The translations under genes were made by a program, and so were the position numbers. A stretch of 64,000 bases of DNA from Bugula neritina (lineage: Eukaryota; Animalia; Bryozoa): NCBI GenBank assembly GCA_964035545.1, contig OZ037773.1:9949751-10013750 (forward strand), read 5' to 3'. Shown in pieces: positions 472 to 61,888 of the stretch (its first letter is position 1; each line of letters begins with the position of its first letter). Below the pieces are notes generated by a model. The model did not search any database, had not been told where the DNA came from, and saw only the letters and a program-made list of their open reading frames with translations.

Positions 472-609
472 TTGATGGAGGCTGGTCATACTGGCCCAAC
501 TGGTCCAGAAGTTACAGAGGCAAAGTCCAGACCAGAACCAGAACCTGTAGCAGACCTCACCCAAGATGTGGAGGAAGATACTGCAGAGGACCCAAGAGCC
601 AAACCAGAT
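472..609 (+). pseudogene. G0: TSR2 exon of a small Tyr/Arg-rich TSR paralog; 5' exons lie outside the window and the 3' end is disrupted
   Basis: 138-nt exon ttacag|TTGATGGA...ACCAGAT|gtgagt encodes VDGGWSYWPNWSRSYRGKVQTRTRTCSRPHPRCGGRYCRGPKSQTR. The expected last exon is present only in inverted form at ~630-650, with its acceptor AG changed to AA. Confidence 0.7.
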
Positions 610-1924
610 GTGAGTTTCACAAAATAATATTATAATACCCAGAGTTTACAGCAAGAAAACATGTTCACGGTTAGAAAACTCTCAGGTTAATAGTTTGTAA
701 ATTCTCTGCAGATTAACTAATTAGCAAATTTTATGTATATACAGCAAATTTTATTAAATCTTATTGCAGTGAAACATATTGACATAATGATTTAATATGG
801 GAATACTAGCTTCTATGTGTAATAAATAATAATATGACTTTCCTTTAATACAAGATCATTATTTTCATTCAAATTTTTCATAAATTGAATGGTATATAAT
901 TTTTATTTATTTAATTTTTGAAGAAAATTTGCTTCAAAATTAATTACCAAAATTAAAAAAAATTGGAAATAAATTTGATATTATTATAGGCTGTTATTTT
1001 ATACTAAACATAATATAGTACCTGATAATAACAAGTATACCTGAATACTTATTATATGAGCAGGTTTACTGGATCTTTTCACTTAAACCTATAACATGTA
1101 TGTGACATGAAGGATATAATAATGTGAATAGATGTACACCGGATACTAACAATAAATTGAATGGTATTACATTATTATTACGTAATGTAATACCAGTAGG
1201 TAAAAAATGCTTTGCTTAGTTAAGTAAAGTGAAACAGCAAGTGCACGTTACATAATTAGGAAAGTATCATACTTCTTGTGTGTAGCATGGAGAGAAATTG
1301 TCTCCTTTACCAATTCTCAAGTTCCCAGGTTTGGGAAGAAAAGTCAAAGGAAACGAAAAGAAGCTAAACTCAAATTTAAAGATGTAGCAGGATGGGAATA
1401 AGTTGTGAAGAAGCTGAGAGAGTATAGATATATTGAGTAGATGGAGGTGTCCTGGCGAACATTAGACAACAACTTACTGGCTCTTTTATAAATAAATTTA
1501 CTCTCGTGAGTATTGTAAAATGCTCATAGAAGATATTCTCCTTGATGAGAACTTTGCATATGTAAAAATATCTAAAAGTATCATTCTGCTTGTTTTTTTT
1601 TTGGTATAAAATACCAATTGGGTGGTTTTTAAGACATAATTTACAGCAGATATATTACTGTATAAAAGCAAACCTTCCATGTTCTACTTTGCAACTTTTC
1701 AAAAAACTTTGCTGATAAGAGAAACAAAATAATATATTTAAATGCTAAACTGTTTATTTAGATTCAACATAACAAAGTTGGATAACAAATTTCATTAAAA
1801 GTTCATTAGCAATAAACAACATTCAACAAATCAATTAATCAAACAGTCTTGAAGTCATTGTGTGAATATCTAGTCCTGGTTTCTTCATGTGAAATGACTT
1901 TCACGGGTCGGGTTTGGGAGGTGT

Positions 1925-58448: not shown

Positions 58449-61400
58449 ATGCGTGAGTTTATCTGTAATACGGCACCTTTGATTTTGAAATTTCCAATAA
58501 AATAGTTGAATAACCTGCTTGGTTCAACTCTGAAACAAATCTTATATCAAACCTTCATATTAGCACTAATTTTAATTATTGGCTGCATTTTTATTTTTTA
58601 TATATATGTATTGTTGCTGTCACTATGTTCTTTTTAAATTAAGATAAACAATTTATTCAACTTTTTGTAAAATTTGCCTTCAGACTATAAACATCCGTTG
58701 CAGAAGCTTGGGTGACTTTTCAGTAACCTTAACTCTCTAATTTTACCCTCGTTACGCTGCAGGGTGTGTGGGTGATCAGCTAATTTCATTGGATAAAACT
58801 GTAACGCAATTTTTATTCAAAATTTAATGATTTTTTGCTTGACGTATGTAGTCTTATTTTAATGCAGTGGTATGGTTTAGATAACTGAAACTTTTAGTCA
58901 AGGTTATATCCAATCCCACATATTTCAGGCTAAAAAAGTCAATGCTTTCATTAAAATGCATCTAATTTGAAAAGTTTTATTTTTACAGCTATGTTTTTTT
59001 ATGCTTATGCAAATTTTTGAAAAGCCTTTTTTACTTGAAGGAATGGGTTTCAAACGCATTGAAGTTGCATTAATTATAGGGGGGGGGGGGGGGTGTCAAG
59101 ATGAGCTTTACATTAGTATACAGATCATGTTTAACTTCAGTGCATGCGGCTAACCTTTGTATTGAGTTACTCCTACTCGATAGGAATACAAAAGTATAAC
59201 CTAAAACCCAACATATTTATTTAATTACACACAACATTTTTTAAAAGAATAAAGTTTTTGTTTGACCAAAAGCCAAACTAATGTAATAATGTAGATAGAT
59301 TGATTTCTTTCAAAGAAAAACTTCTGTAAAAATAGCTACTGTATATCAAGTTTTGAGCACAGAATAGAAAGAACTTTCAATAAATTGAACTTCGCATTCT
59401 TTTGTAGAATTCTTCAGACAGTTCTCAGTTTTGGCGTGTCTCGCAGTTGGTGAGTTTTAATGTTGCTTAGAAATTTCTGAGTATACAAGCAAAATGAAAT
59501 TATGACATTTTCTTTGTTTACTTGTGAAGTTAAACAGTATATCTTGACTAACAAACTGCTTTATATATATTAGTTAGATTATTAAAGGCCGGAGATATTT
59601 AGGGCAACTGGTTCTATCAACAGAATTGTTGCTTCCAAATAGTTTTCTAGTTCAAATTATAGTATTTTCATATTTAGTAAACTCAGAATATCTTAAGCTG
59701 TGTTTTATTGGATAAAAAGGTGCTAAATGACTGAAATTCCTCATAATAATTATTGTTCAAGTTGTAAAGTTTGTTTCAATGTGAAATTGACACGTGTCAT
59801 GCATGACAAAAATACATCAGTTAGAAATACATTTATTATAATCTGTAAAATAATTAATTATGGTAAATATTGCACCATTGCTGTAACTTGCTAAATATAG
59901 CTATGAATTATTGCAGTTTACCAAAACATATTTTATTTCAAGTGATTGTTAGTTGCCATGGTTACTCAGTGGCAGGCAAGTTTGATTGGCAAAGCTTCAA
60001 GCACTTAGCGCAGAAGGCAGGAGTGAAAAGTTACAACACAGTTAAAGGTGTGTGAAATATATGAGTAGCTTCTCATTATTAAATTACCTGATTAGTATAT
60101 TATTATGTTATCTTATACTATATCATGATATTAAATTACTATATATTATATATATATACTATATTACATATTACATTATTATATTAAGTTATCATGTTAT
60201 ATCTTTATACTGCATCTTAAAAATATTACTATGATATATTATTCTTATATAATATTTTATTATTGTATTGTATTATATTATATATATATATATATATATA
60301 TATATATATATATATATATATATATATATATATATATATATATATATATATATATATATATATATATATAAATCAAATAGACTTTTAATGAAGCAGCAAA
60401 AAAATAGCTGAGCAGAGTGTTTCAATTTTGATAAGTTGTAAAATTTTTAGTAGCAAATCACAAGAATTTGTAAAAAAGTAAAAAGTGATGTTGATCACTG
60501 GTTTTTCAGGCATAAAAAATCACTACAAATTAGCTGAAGACTTCAATTCATGAAAAAAAGTTTATGGCAAGCTTGCAAGTCTATTTGGCTTTAGAGAGGC
60601 TTTTGAAAGTTAATTCTGACTTATTTTCACACTACCAACTCTATATATAGTAACTAATCAAATAGCTGTAATATGAACATATATAACAATTTATAACACT
60701 GCACACTCTAATGATTAGCCCTTCTTCCAATACATGTGCTAATCTATCAGACTTATGTCATTTGCTTTTATCACTGGATGAGAGAACCGTAAAATTTTAG
60801 ACGTGACATTGCATTACTATTAGTACACCGGAAACTGAAAGTGTATAGAGGGCAATATCACTTTAGTAACATAACATTACTAAACTCTAAACTGGTTGCT
60901 TAGGGTGAGAATAGCTCATCATATAAGGATGTGAGGTTTTGTCAACTTGCACACATCAAAGGAAAGATAATTGCTAGGCAATGTATAGAGAATTGAAGCA
61001 GTTGCCAACATATGTGTATGTCATGGTATAAATCATTGCCGGATGGCTCCTTTTAGTTGGTGCTGAATAATAATAATGTTGTATCAGTTGAAGTGAACTC
61101 ACTTCCACCAAGGAGTGCTTTTTTGCTTCACATCCTCTCCACACAGCTTTTAGTTACACCAAAGAAATATGATAAATGATTATATAATAAAGTATTAGAC
61201 GCAATGATTTTAAGCTAGCTTTTCAGTGTTGTCTAAAACATAGTTTTGATTGCATTGTAATTATTTGCAATGAAATTATTTTAAAATAGTAAGTAAATGT
61301 ATATTTATCATACAGTTGAATTTGTCAGACTGTAGGAATAAGAAAACTCTTGGTTCTAATAGCCAAGCCTGTGTGACTTCATATCCTGTTTTAGATGAAG

Positions 61401-61888
61401 TTAAATCATGGAGGCCATGGAGTGAATGGACAGAGTGCACAAGGAAATGTGGCCGAGGTGTTCACTCAAGGATAAGATACTGTGAGACGGGAAGGCACGG
61501 TAGCCCCCCTTACAGCAAATACGGGTGTTATGGGCCTGCGATAGAAAGCAAAGTGTGCATGGGCACATCCTGTCCTAATAATAATAGTAAGATTATTATT
61601 ACTAAACAATACACACACACGCACGCACACATATATACATATATACATATATATATATATATATATATATATATATATATATATATATATATATATATAT
61701 ATATATATATATATATGTATATATATATATATATATATATATATATATATATATATATATATATATATATACATATATATATATATATATATATATGTAT
61801 ATATATATTAAAATCCATATACATAATATAACACATAAGATATACAGGAAAGATGAGAAAACTTATTTATTATTCAGATTACTGGTGA
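58449..61888 (+). CDS. G10: divergent secreted single-TSR family member, 93 or 117 aa depending on the exon 3 donor
   Basis: Exons 58449-58452 (ATGC|gtgagt), 59408-59449 (42 nt), 59943-59975 or 59943-60047, 61395-61586, 61878-61888. [26 protein letters not shown]...[67 protein letters not shown]. The TSR exon is clear; flanking exons are inferred from the family scaffold. Confidence 0.72.
60279..60370. repeat. (TA)n microsatellite
   Basis: Directly visible. Confidence 0.95.
61610..61806. repeat. (CA)n/(TA)n microsatellite in the last intron of G10
   Basis: Directly visible. Confidence 0.95.

Follow-up and report, generated by a model that had tools for sequence, protein, structure and literature searches.

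Organization of the TSR gene cluster

The 64,000-nt stretch of DNA analyzed in this work (hereafter the window) lies on what is most likely chromosome 9 (C9) of the ruby bryozoan, Bugula neritina (C9:9,949,751-10,013,750 of assembly tzBugNeri2.1, GCA_964035545.1), and contains ten genes (G1 to G10) for secreted proteins related to the thrombospondin type 1 repeat (TSR) together with a lone exon (G11) left over from another. These genes very probably belong to a tandemly duplicated family of small secreted proteins, known so far from bryozoans only, in which a signal peptide is followed by a low-complexity cassette, a canonical TSR (TSR1), usually a reduced second repeat (TSR2) and a short tail. 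An initial annotation of the window had described a hidden cluster of eleven such genes; ten were confirmed on one plan, the eleventh proved to be a rearranged single exon, and the cluster itself belongs to a larger array, which numbers at least 31 genes.

Gene models were rebuilt by script from exons found by six-frame scans, a signal-exon pattern search and BLAST. They agree with the exon scaffold first proposed, namely ATG plus one nucleotide, a 42-nt signal-peptide exon, a variable exon 3, one or two TSR exons and a coding tail of 11-26 nt, with 45 of 45 introns bounded by GT-AG and all in phase 1, since every internal exon is a multiple of three. The products carry canonical signal peptides and a tail peptide beginning with x-Tyr-Gly/Ser/Trp. 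Spliced frames are open in nine genes (the reference sequence of G5 being the exception), the longest, that of G6, measuring 1,995 nt. A TATA-like box precedes the ATG of each gene by 65-80 nt (about 75 nt in G1) and a poly(A) signal, AATAAA or ATTAAA, lies 126-308 nt past the stop codon, a distance of 165-168 nt in G1-G5 (AATAAA at 167 nt in G1); the first exon therefore holds the 5′ untranslated region as well, the "4-nt exon" being merely its coding end. Because exon 1 codes for 4 nt and the signal peptide is confined to a 42-nt exon, ordinary calling of open reading frames (ORFs) misses these gene models.

The small class comprises G1 to G5. The first three encode 144 aa each with coding exons of 4/42/54/180/138/17 nt: G1 on the minus strand at 1925-4257 (exons 4257-4254, 3656-3615, 3460-3407, 3030-2851, 2550-2413 and 1941-1925), G2 on the plus strand at 9567-12119 (9567-9570, 10147-10188, 10380-10433, 10812-10991, 11525-11662 and 12103-12119) and G3, also on the plus strand, at 15978-18255 (15978-15981, 16490-16531, 16698-16751, 17133-17312, 17624-17761 and 18239-18255). 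In G4 (148 aa; minus strand, 20422-22250; exons 22250-22247, 21764-21723, 21547-21482, 21091-20774 and 20438-20422; 4/42/66/318/17 nt) both TSRs occupy a single exon. G5, frameshifted in the reference allele, lies on the minus strand at 25235-27237, with exons 27237-27234, 26672-26632, 26441-26394, 26032-25718 and 25251-25235 (4/41/48/315/17 nt).

The His-array class consists of G6 (664 aa; minus strand, 29730-33608; exons 33608-33605, 33037-32996, 32647-31049, 30832-30653, 30360-30217 and 29755-29730; 4/42/1599/180/144/26 nt) and G8 (453 aa; minus strand, 40248-43818; exons 43818-43815, 43113-43072, 42640-41654, 41359-41201, 40794-40651 and 40273-40248; 4/42/987/159/144/26 nt). Between them lies G7, in which exon 3 is of the Arg/Pro type and the TSR is degenerate (94 aa; minus strand, 36649-38545; exons 38545-38542, 38029-37988, 37760-37695, 37379-37233 and 36674-36649; 4/42/66/147/26 nt). 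The last two genes each have a single TSR: G9, with a Gly/His/Tyr exon 3 (101 aa; minus strand, 52011-54164; exons 54164-54161, 53685-53644, 53309-53238, 52321-52151 and 52027-52011; 4/42/72/171/17 nt), and G10, whose exon 3 is distinct (117 aa; plus strand, 58449-61888; exons 58449-58452, 59408-59449, 59943-60047, 61395-61586 and 61878-61888; 4/42/105/192/11 nt).

TSR domains and their predicted fold

The TSR assignment was borne out by the Pfam TSP_1 profile (PF00090; gathering cutoff, 21.6 bits), against which the TSR1 exons of G4, G6, G8, G9 and G10 scored 30.5-39.8 bits (30.5 for G9 and 39.2 for G10), the exception being the TSR-derived exon of G7, which has lost the Trp ladder and matched no Pfam family. 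The scan covered the TSR exons of these five genes, TSR2 of G1 and G6, the G7 exon and the G6 array, and only TSP_1-type families were matched; the TSR1 exons of G1-G3 and G5 are at least 85% identical to that of G4 over the same exon. TSR2 exons on their own scored at most 13.8 bits, under the cutoff. TSR1 has a W-x-x-W-x-x-W ladder, a CS(K/R)TCG motif with an O-fucosylation-type site, R-x-R strands and the six-Cys topology plus a seventh Cys (CCP). In the alignment the Trp ladder and R-x-R strand are still recognizable in TSR2; CSxxCG and the last two Cys are absent from it, which leaves three Cys. A disulfide between TSR1 and TSR2 is likely, because the total Cys count is even.

An AlphaFold2 model of TSR1 and TSR2 of G4 (mean pLDDT 87.2) conformed to the three-stranded TSR fold, which is characterized by a Trp-Arg stack and disulfide caps; the reduced TSR2 was also modelled with high confidence. 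In Foldseek searches with this model the top matches were TSRs of thrombospondin-1 (1lsl, 3r6b and 7yyk; E 6e-9 to 1e-8, TM 0.65-0.68), the best being thrombospondin-1 TSR2-3 (1lsl, E 6e-9, TM 0.68), followed by properdin, C6 and semaphorin-5A TSR3-4; UNC5 and ADAMTS13 were also retrieved, and the matches included crystal structures of semaphorin-5A TSRs with sulfate and with sucrose octasulfate. The TSR1 motifs, the TSP_1 score above cutoff and the modelled tandem fold thus liken these proteins to the TSRs of thrombospondin and properdin, from which they differ in being only 94-148 aa long or in carrying a long array, in having no other domains and in their reduced TSR2. Protein searches with the TSR exon of G4 returned only B. 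neritina entries as close relatives, and generic two-TSR proteins of cnidarians and molluscs at 40-49% identity. As a lead only, the ESM Atlas places the GenBank protein in an unnamed TSP1 cluster of 175 members, most of them bryozoan.

The variable third exon

Exon 3 changes chemistry between genes as initially described, being rich in Tyr/Gly/His in G1-G5 and G9, in Arg/Pro in G7 and composed of His-His-Ala/Glu-Pro arrays in G6 and G8; the 105-nt exon 3 of G10 falls outside all three chemistries. The mature small-class proteins have about 124-128 aa, a pI of 10.0-10.1 and GYY near both ends, and contain 11.7-12.9% Tyr, 13.7-15.6% Gly, 16-18% Ser and 12-16% Arg. Mature G7 is an Arg/Pro-rich peptide of 74 residues.

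The G6 array (31049-32647, minus strand), a His-His-(Ala/Glu)-Pro-Ala array, is a tandem repeat of 30 copies of 45 nt, and that of G8 one of 39 copies of 21 nt; the repeat unit in both is PAHH(A/E)PA(A), and roughly 45-65 His-His pairs per protein are regularly spaced between Pro/Ala spacers. The two proteins contain 19.4-19.9% His, 25-27% Ala, 17-20% Pro, 2.6-4.2% Gly and 0.9-1.6% Tyr. Mature G6 is dominated by exon 3 (20% His, 27% Ala and 17% Pro, hence 64% Ala+His+Pro; pI 6.9). The expectation of a basic Tyr-rich class (pI about 10, 12-13% Tyr) beside a His-rich class (19-20% His) was accordingly upheld. Both are biased compositions of the adhesive or cuticle type, and composition alone does not define membership. 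The G6 array matched no Pfam family and, among 5.8 billion proteins, yielded a single marginal match (E 1.9e-4, 7% coverage) and no homologue beyond composition.

Counterparts in an independent assembly and selection

In the draft genome of 2020 (GCA_010799875.2), the contigs VXIV02003021.1 and VXIV02000994.1 are collinear with approximately 15-36 kb of the window (15000-36700). According to the description of that draft, its genes were modelled by AUGUSTUS with transcriptome hints and named via eggNOG-mapper. Counterparts of G4 (KAF6021493.1, 147 aa, named "C9"), G5 (KAF6034802.1) and G6 (650 aa) had been modelled there under the name "C9" or as hypothetical proteins, so that the cluster was hidden only in its other members, which are split or missed in the draft. 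G4 and KAF6021493.1 are 95% identical with the same exon plan, and the AUGUSTUS models of KAF6021493.1 and KAF6034802.1 have the same splice plan as the window models.

The draft model of the G6 counterpart (VXIV02000994.1, 3663-7037) takes as its start an ATG within the intron, so that exon 2 is extended. This start was rejected for G6 and G8, the ATG being absent from the present genome; no in-frame ATG occurs here upstream of exon 2 in either gene, which leaves the ATG+1 exon as the sole start that is possible. Kept in both assemblies, the ATG+1 first exon is likely the true start of the G6 counterpart as well. The two draft contigs differ by about 10-25% of nucleotides from each other and by about 10-30% from the window, block by block; strongly diverged haplotypes, mixing in the sample or cryptic lineages within "B. 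neritina" may be the cause.

The name "C9" carried by KAF6021493.1 (A0A7J7J5T6) was rejected as an indication of complement C9. The 147-aa protein has neither a MACPF nor an LDLa domain, precomputed Pfam annotation for it and for the G5 counterpart lists TSP_1-type families only, and the unscanned signal, short exon 3 and tail exons are too short for a MACPF domain. The TSR domain is the sole feature in common with complement C9, and the name is a transfer by eggNOG-mapper.

In the reference, the 41-nt second exon of G5 (26632-26672) reads ATG GAC CGA AGA GTT TTA TAG and thus stops after six codons. The only public run with the locus (X1, DNA-like) was compared over 25150-29700; its contigs have one extra base behind position 26659, which on the gene strand restores GTTTTGATAG and a 42-nt exon, with SNPs and indels nearby. 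Both G5 copies of the 2020 draft also have the 42-nt exon (one at VXIV02003021.1, 5023-5064), and one of them is annotated as intact with 147 aa. The 41-nt exon noted initially is therefore present in the reference and is not a feature of the gene. G5 as a dead gene was rejected on account of the X1 contigs and the intact draft counterparts: it is a live gene, of which the reference carries an allele-specific (segregating) null or a consensus error.

The ratio dN/dS was 0.13 for G4 against its draft counterpart (dS 0.16), 0.14-0.23 among G1-G3 (0.23 for G1 and G2), 0.37-0.38 between G1-G3 and G4, and 0.21 for the TSR part of G6 against G8. The coding sequence of G2 is 96% identical to that of G1, the TSR1 protein sequence does not differ among G1-G3, and the G6 array also measures about 1.5 kb in the draft counterpart, many substitutions notwithstanding. 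That the locus is non-functional, a set of chance exon-like patterns or a decaying array of pseudogenes, is hardly tenable: the G11 remnant and the frameshifted reference allele of G5 would fit such decay, but nine open frames, canonical splice sites throughout, dN/dS well under 1, the same splice plan in an independent annotation and the existence of an intact G5 allele speak against it. These sequence comparisons show the TSR genes to be real and under purifying selection.

Exon exchange, intron loss and a gene remnant

Apart from the first, all coding exons are symmetric (phase 1-1), and gene copies can therefore swap, lose or expand exons with the frame left intact. On its 5′ side G7 matches the small class at 86-91%, sharing with it the promoter, the first two exons, the beginning of exon 3 and a portion of intron 3, and its tail and 3′ region match G8; judged from these matches, G7 is a chimera of the small and His-array classes. 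An intron separates TSR1 from TSR2 in G1-G3, G6, G8 and one of the draft copies of G5 (where it is 260 nt long, GT..AG; VXIV02003021.1, 5830-6089). It is missing from all copies of G4 (20774-21091 in the window), from G5 of the window (25718-26032) and from the other draft copy of G5; G4 and G5 of the window have lost it.

G11 (472-609, plus strand) is a lone TSR2-type exon with an open frame, 89-94% identical to the TSR2 exons of G1-G5. Directly after it, at 633-975, a copy of the last intron of the G4 type, together with 13 nt of the tail exon, lies in inverted orientation, and no TSR1 or signal exon was found within 10 kb to its left. It was consequently rejected as a full eleventh gene and is described here as a gene remnant.

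Extent of the array, promoters and genomic context

A search of the genome and of 130 kb of flanking sequence revealed at least 22 more TSR1 exons like those of G1-G10 beyond the window, located at 10.066-10.184 Mb, 9.80 Mb and 9.83 Mb of C9; for about half of these, a reduced TSR2 exon was detected as well. All eleven flanking signal exons tested have an ATG+1/GTRAG exon upstream, and in ten of the eleven a TSR1-type exon comes next, of 180-186 nt in nine. The short exon 3 could be read in six flanking genes and abounds in His, Tyr, Pro and basic residues. The array thus totals at least 31 genes within 380 kb (approximately 9.80-10.18 Mb of C9). In our literature search we encountered no description of a TSR pair joined to an exchangeable Tyr/His/Arg or His-array cassette, nor of an expansion to 31 or more such genes.

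The promoters fall into four unrelated groups, formed by G1-G5 with G7, by G6 with G8, by G9 and by G10. A block rich in TAATTA-type (homeodomain-like) motifs, situated 215-410 nt before the ATG (approximately 33820-34020 and 44030-44230), is conserved between G6 and G8 and absent from the other classes.

The B. neritina genome is unusually rich in TSR genes. Other TSR arrays were observed on C9 (1.38-1.71 Mb and 7.5 Mb), C3 (6.66, 7.56 and 11.06 Mb) and C2 (12.01 Mb), among them more TSR1+TSR2 pairs and long open frames of 632 and 862 aa that span multiple TSRs. Outside the His arrays the window has a G+C content of 26-35% and is thus AT-rich. Between G1 and G2, at approximately 5585-6160, a minisatellite with a 21-nt unit (GTGACAATGTTATACAGTGTT and variants) generates spurious ORFs on both strands, and a dip in GC skew at 56-58 kb was rejected as a coding cassette, positions 56480-57130 being a long (CT)n microsatellite with C-runs.

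Possible functions of the encoded proteins

Our literature search retrieved no bryozoan TSR, cuticle, adhesive or skeletal proteome and no molecular inventory of the cuticle, holdfast or larval glue, and a paper on zooid expression in Bugulina stolonifera does not mention thrombospondin. By analogy with the proteins discussed below, we tentatively favor an extracellular matrix role for the proteins of this family, whether in the chitinous cuticle, the holdfast or an adhesive, and their biased, cross-link-prone composition leans the same way with similar reserve. The TSR pair, locked by disulfides, would be a stable module that binds sulfated or acidic glycans or other matrix proteins; in the small basic class, cross-linking or coacervation would take place at the Tyr/Gly/His/Arg ends; and in G6 and G8 the His-Ala-Pro arrays would function as disordered blocks switchable by pH or metal. 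The near-identical copies G1-G3 suggest amplification for dosage.

Two known systems offer the closest comparisons. TSRL, an adhesive-secretion protein of the sea anemone Diadumene lineata with three TSRs and a mass of 25 kDa, forms hydrogels and adsorbs to surfaces in recombinant form (PMC12817120). The occurrence of TSR proteins in bivalve byssus, to which the initial annotation had appealed, is supported by TSP1-domain proteins of Pinctada (pearl oyster) byssus (PMC12817120). Like TSRL, the B. neritina proteins are small, secreted and cysteine-rich, with TSRs as their only domains, and they may work in the manner of such adhesive TSR proteins; TSRL, compared by description only, differs in having three TSRs and in coming from another phylum, and the review mentions no low-complexity Tyr/His ends or His arrays. 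Also as anticipated, His-rich proteins are described in the hardening of chitin in squid beak, where disordered His/Ala/Gly-rich proteins coacervate near seawater pH and stiffen chitin, their defining repeats being GHGxY and GAGFA pentapeptides (PMC11931252). G6 resembles the squid-beak proteins HBP-1, -2 and -3 in its near-neutral pI of 6.9, its 64% Ala+His+Pro, its predicted disordered repeats and its origin in an animal with a chitin cuticle. The repeat of G6 and G8, PAHH(A/E)PA(A), is however a different one, with almost no Gly or Tyr in the array, and the array is fused to TSRs. Homology to squid-beak or other known His-rich structural proteins was rejected because the G6 and G8 arrays lack the defining GHGxY/GAGFA motif.

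Several points weigh against a structural role. The interpretation is built on composition and analogy alone; the G6 and G8 arrays are devoid of the Gly/Tyr motifs (GHGxY) that drive coacervation of the squid-beak proteins; and there is no sequence sign of co-regulation between the gene classes, co-secretion being an assumption because the promoters differ from class to class. Moreover, defence molecules are just as typically secreted, cationic, rich in cysteine and expanded in tandem, and microbe recognition is also a task of TSRs, as in properdin, a top fold match. The main rival, a part in humoral defence or in the handling of microbes or symbionts, in which the TSR pair would bind microbial glycans, the cationic ends would be membrane-active or agglutinating and diverged copies would widen recognition, seems rather unlikely. 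It would account for small, cysteine-rich secreted products of pI about 10, for the large array with its fast-diverging exon 3, for the TSRs of properdin and C6 among the best fold matches and for G7, which without a TSR core is an Arg/Pro-rich 74-residue peptide; B. neritina also harbors a heritable bacterial symbiont. Yet the TSR core is under purifying and not diversifying selection (dN/dS 0.13-0.38, with an identical TSR1 protein in G1-G3), and His-Ala-Pro arrays of 450-660 residues are unlike known effectors.

Another TSR-type extracellular role, such as matrix organization, cell guidance or protease regulation during budding or metamorphosis with the low-complexity exon as a mere spacer, would agree with the many signalling and matrix contexts in which TSRs serve and with the semaphorin-5A, UNC5 and ADAMTS13 matches, but appears improbable given that signalling ligands do not usually undergo a lineage-specific expansion to 31 or more near-minimal genes whose products have strongly biased ends, and that partner domains are absent. 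For G6 and G8 alone, extracellular Cu/Zn binding for sequestration or for matrix hardening, which overlaps with the structural interpretation, is doubtful on the present evidence. The evenly spaced HH pairs between Pro/Ala spacers, the 19-20% His of both proteins and the similar length of the array in the draft counterpart would suit metal handling, and B. neritina, as a fouling species, is copper-tolerant. Such arrays, on the other hand, occur in only two of the ten window genes, and His-rich repeats can also operate as pH switches without metal (PMC11931252). The extracellular matrix interpretation remains the one that we tentatively prefer.

Taken to its furthest extent, that interpretation would make the family the principal set of proteins from which bryozoans build their cuticle and holdfast, with the TSR as an anchor to chitin-associated or sulfated glycans, the Tyr ends cross-linking, and the His-His arrays acting as Cu/Zn-coordinating, pH-switched blocks for hardening or as metal-sequestering blocks, perhaps aiding copper tolerance; we consider this broad version unlikely.

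Implications

This work provides verified models of genes that lie beyond the reach of ordinary ORF calling, and they form part of a large family with evidence of selection. The locus illustrates cleanly how low-complexity cassettes are swapped and expanded on an exon scaffold of phase 1-1, and the misleading database name "C9" is corrected. A material or adhesive function is plausible by analogy and, if true, would provide biomaterials work with new modules that are small, stabilized by disulfides and fused to Tyr or His blocks, and antifouling research with new targets, B. neritina being a major fouling organism. A defence role would instead define a new class of TSR-based effectors in lophotrochozoans, and, should the family prove to be a cuticle toolkit, the fusion of a TSR to a His array would represent a new structural-protein design.

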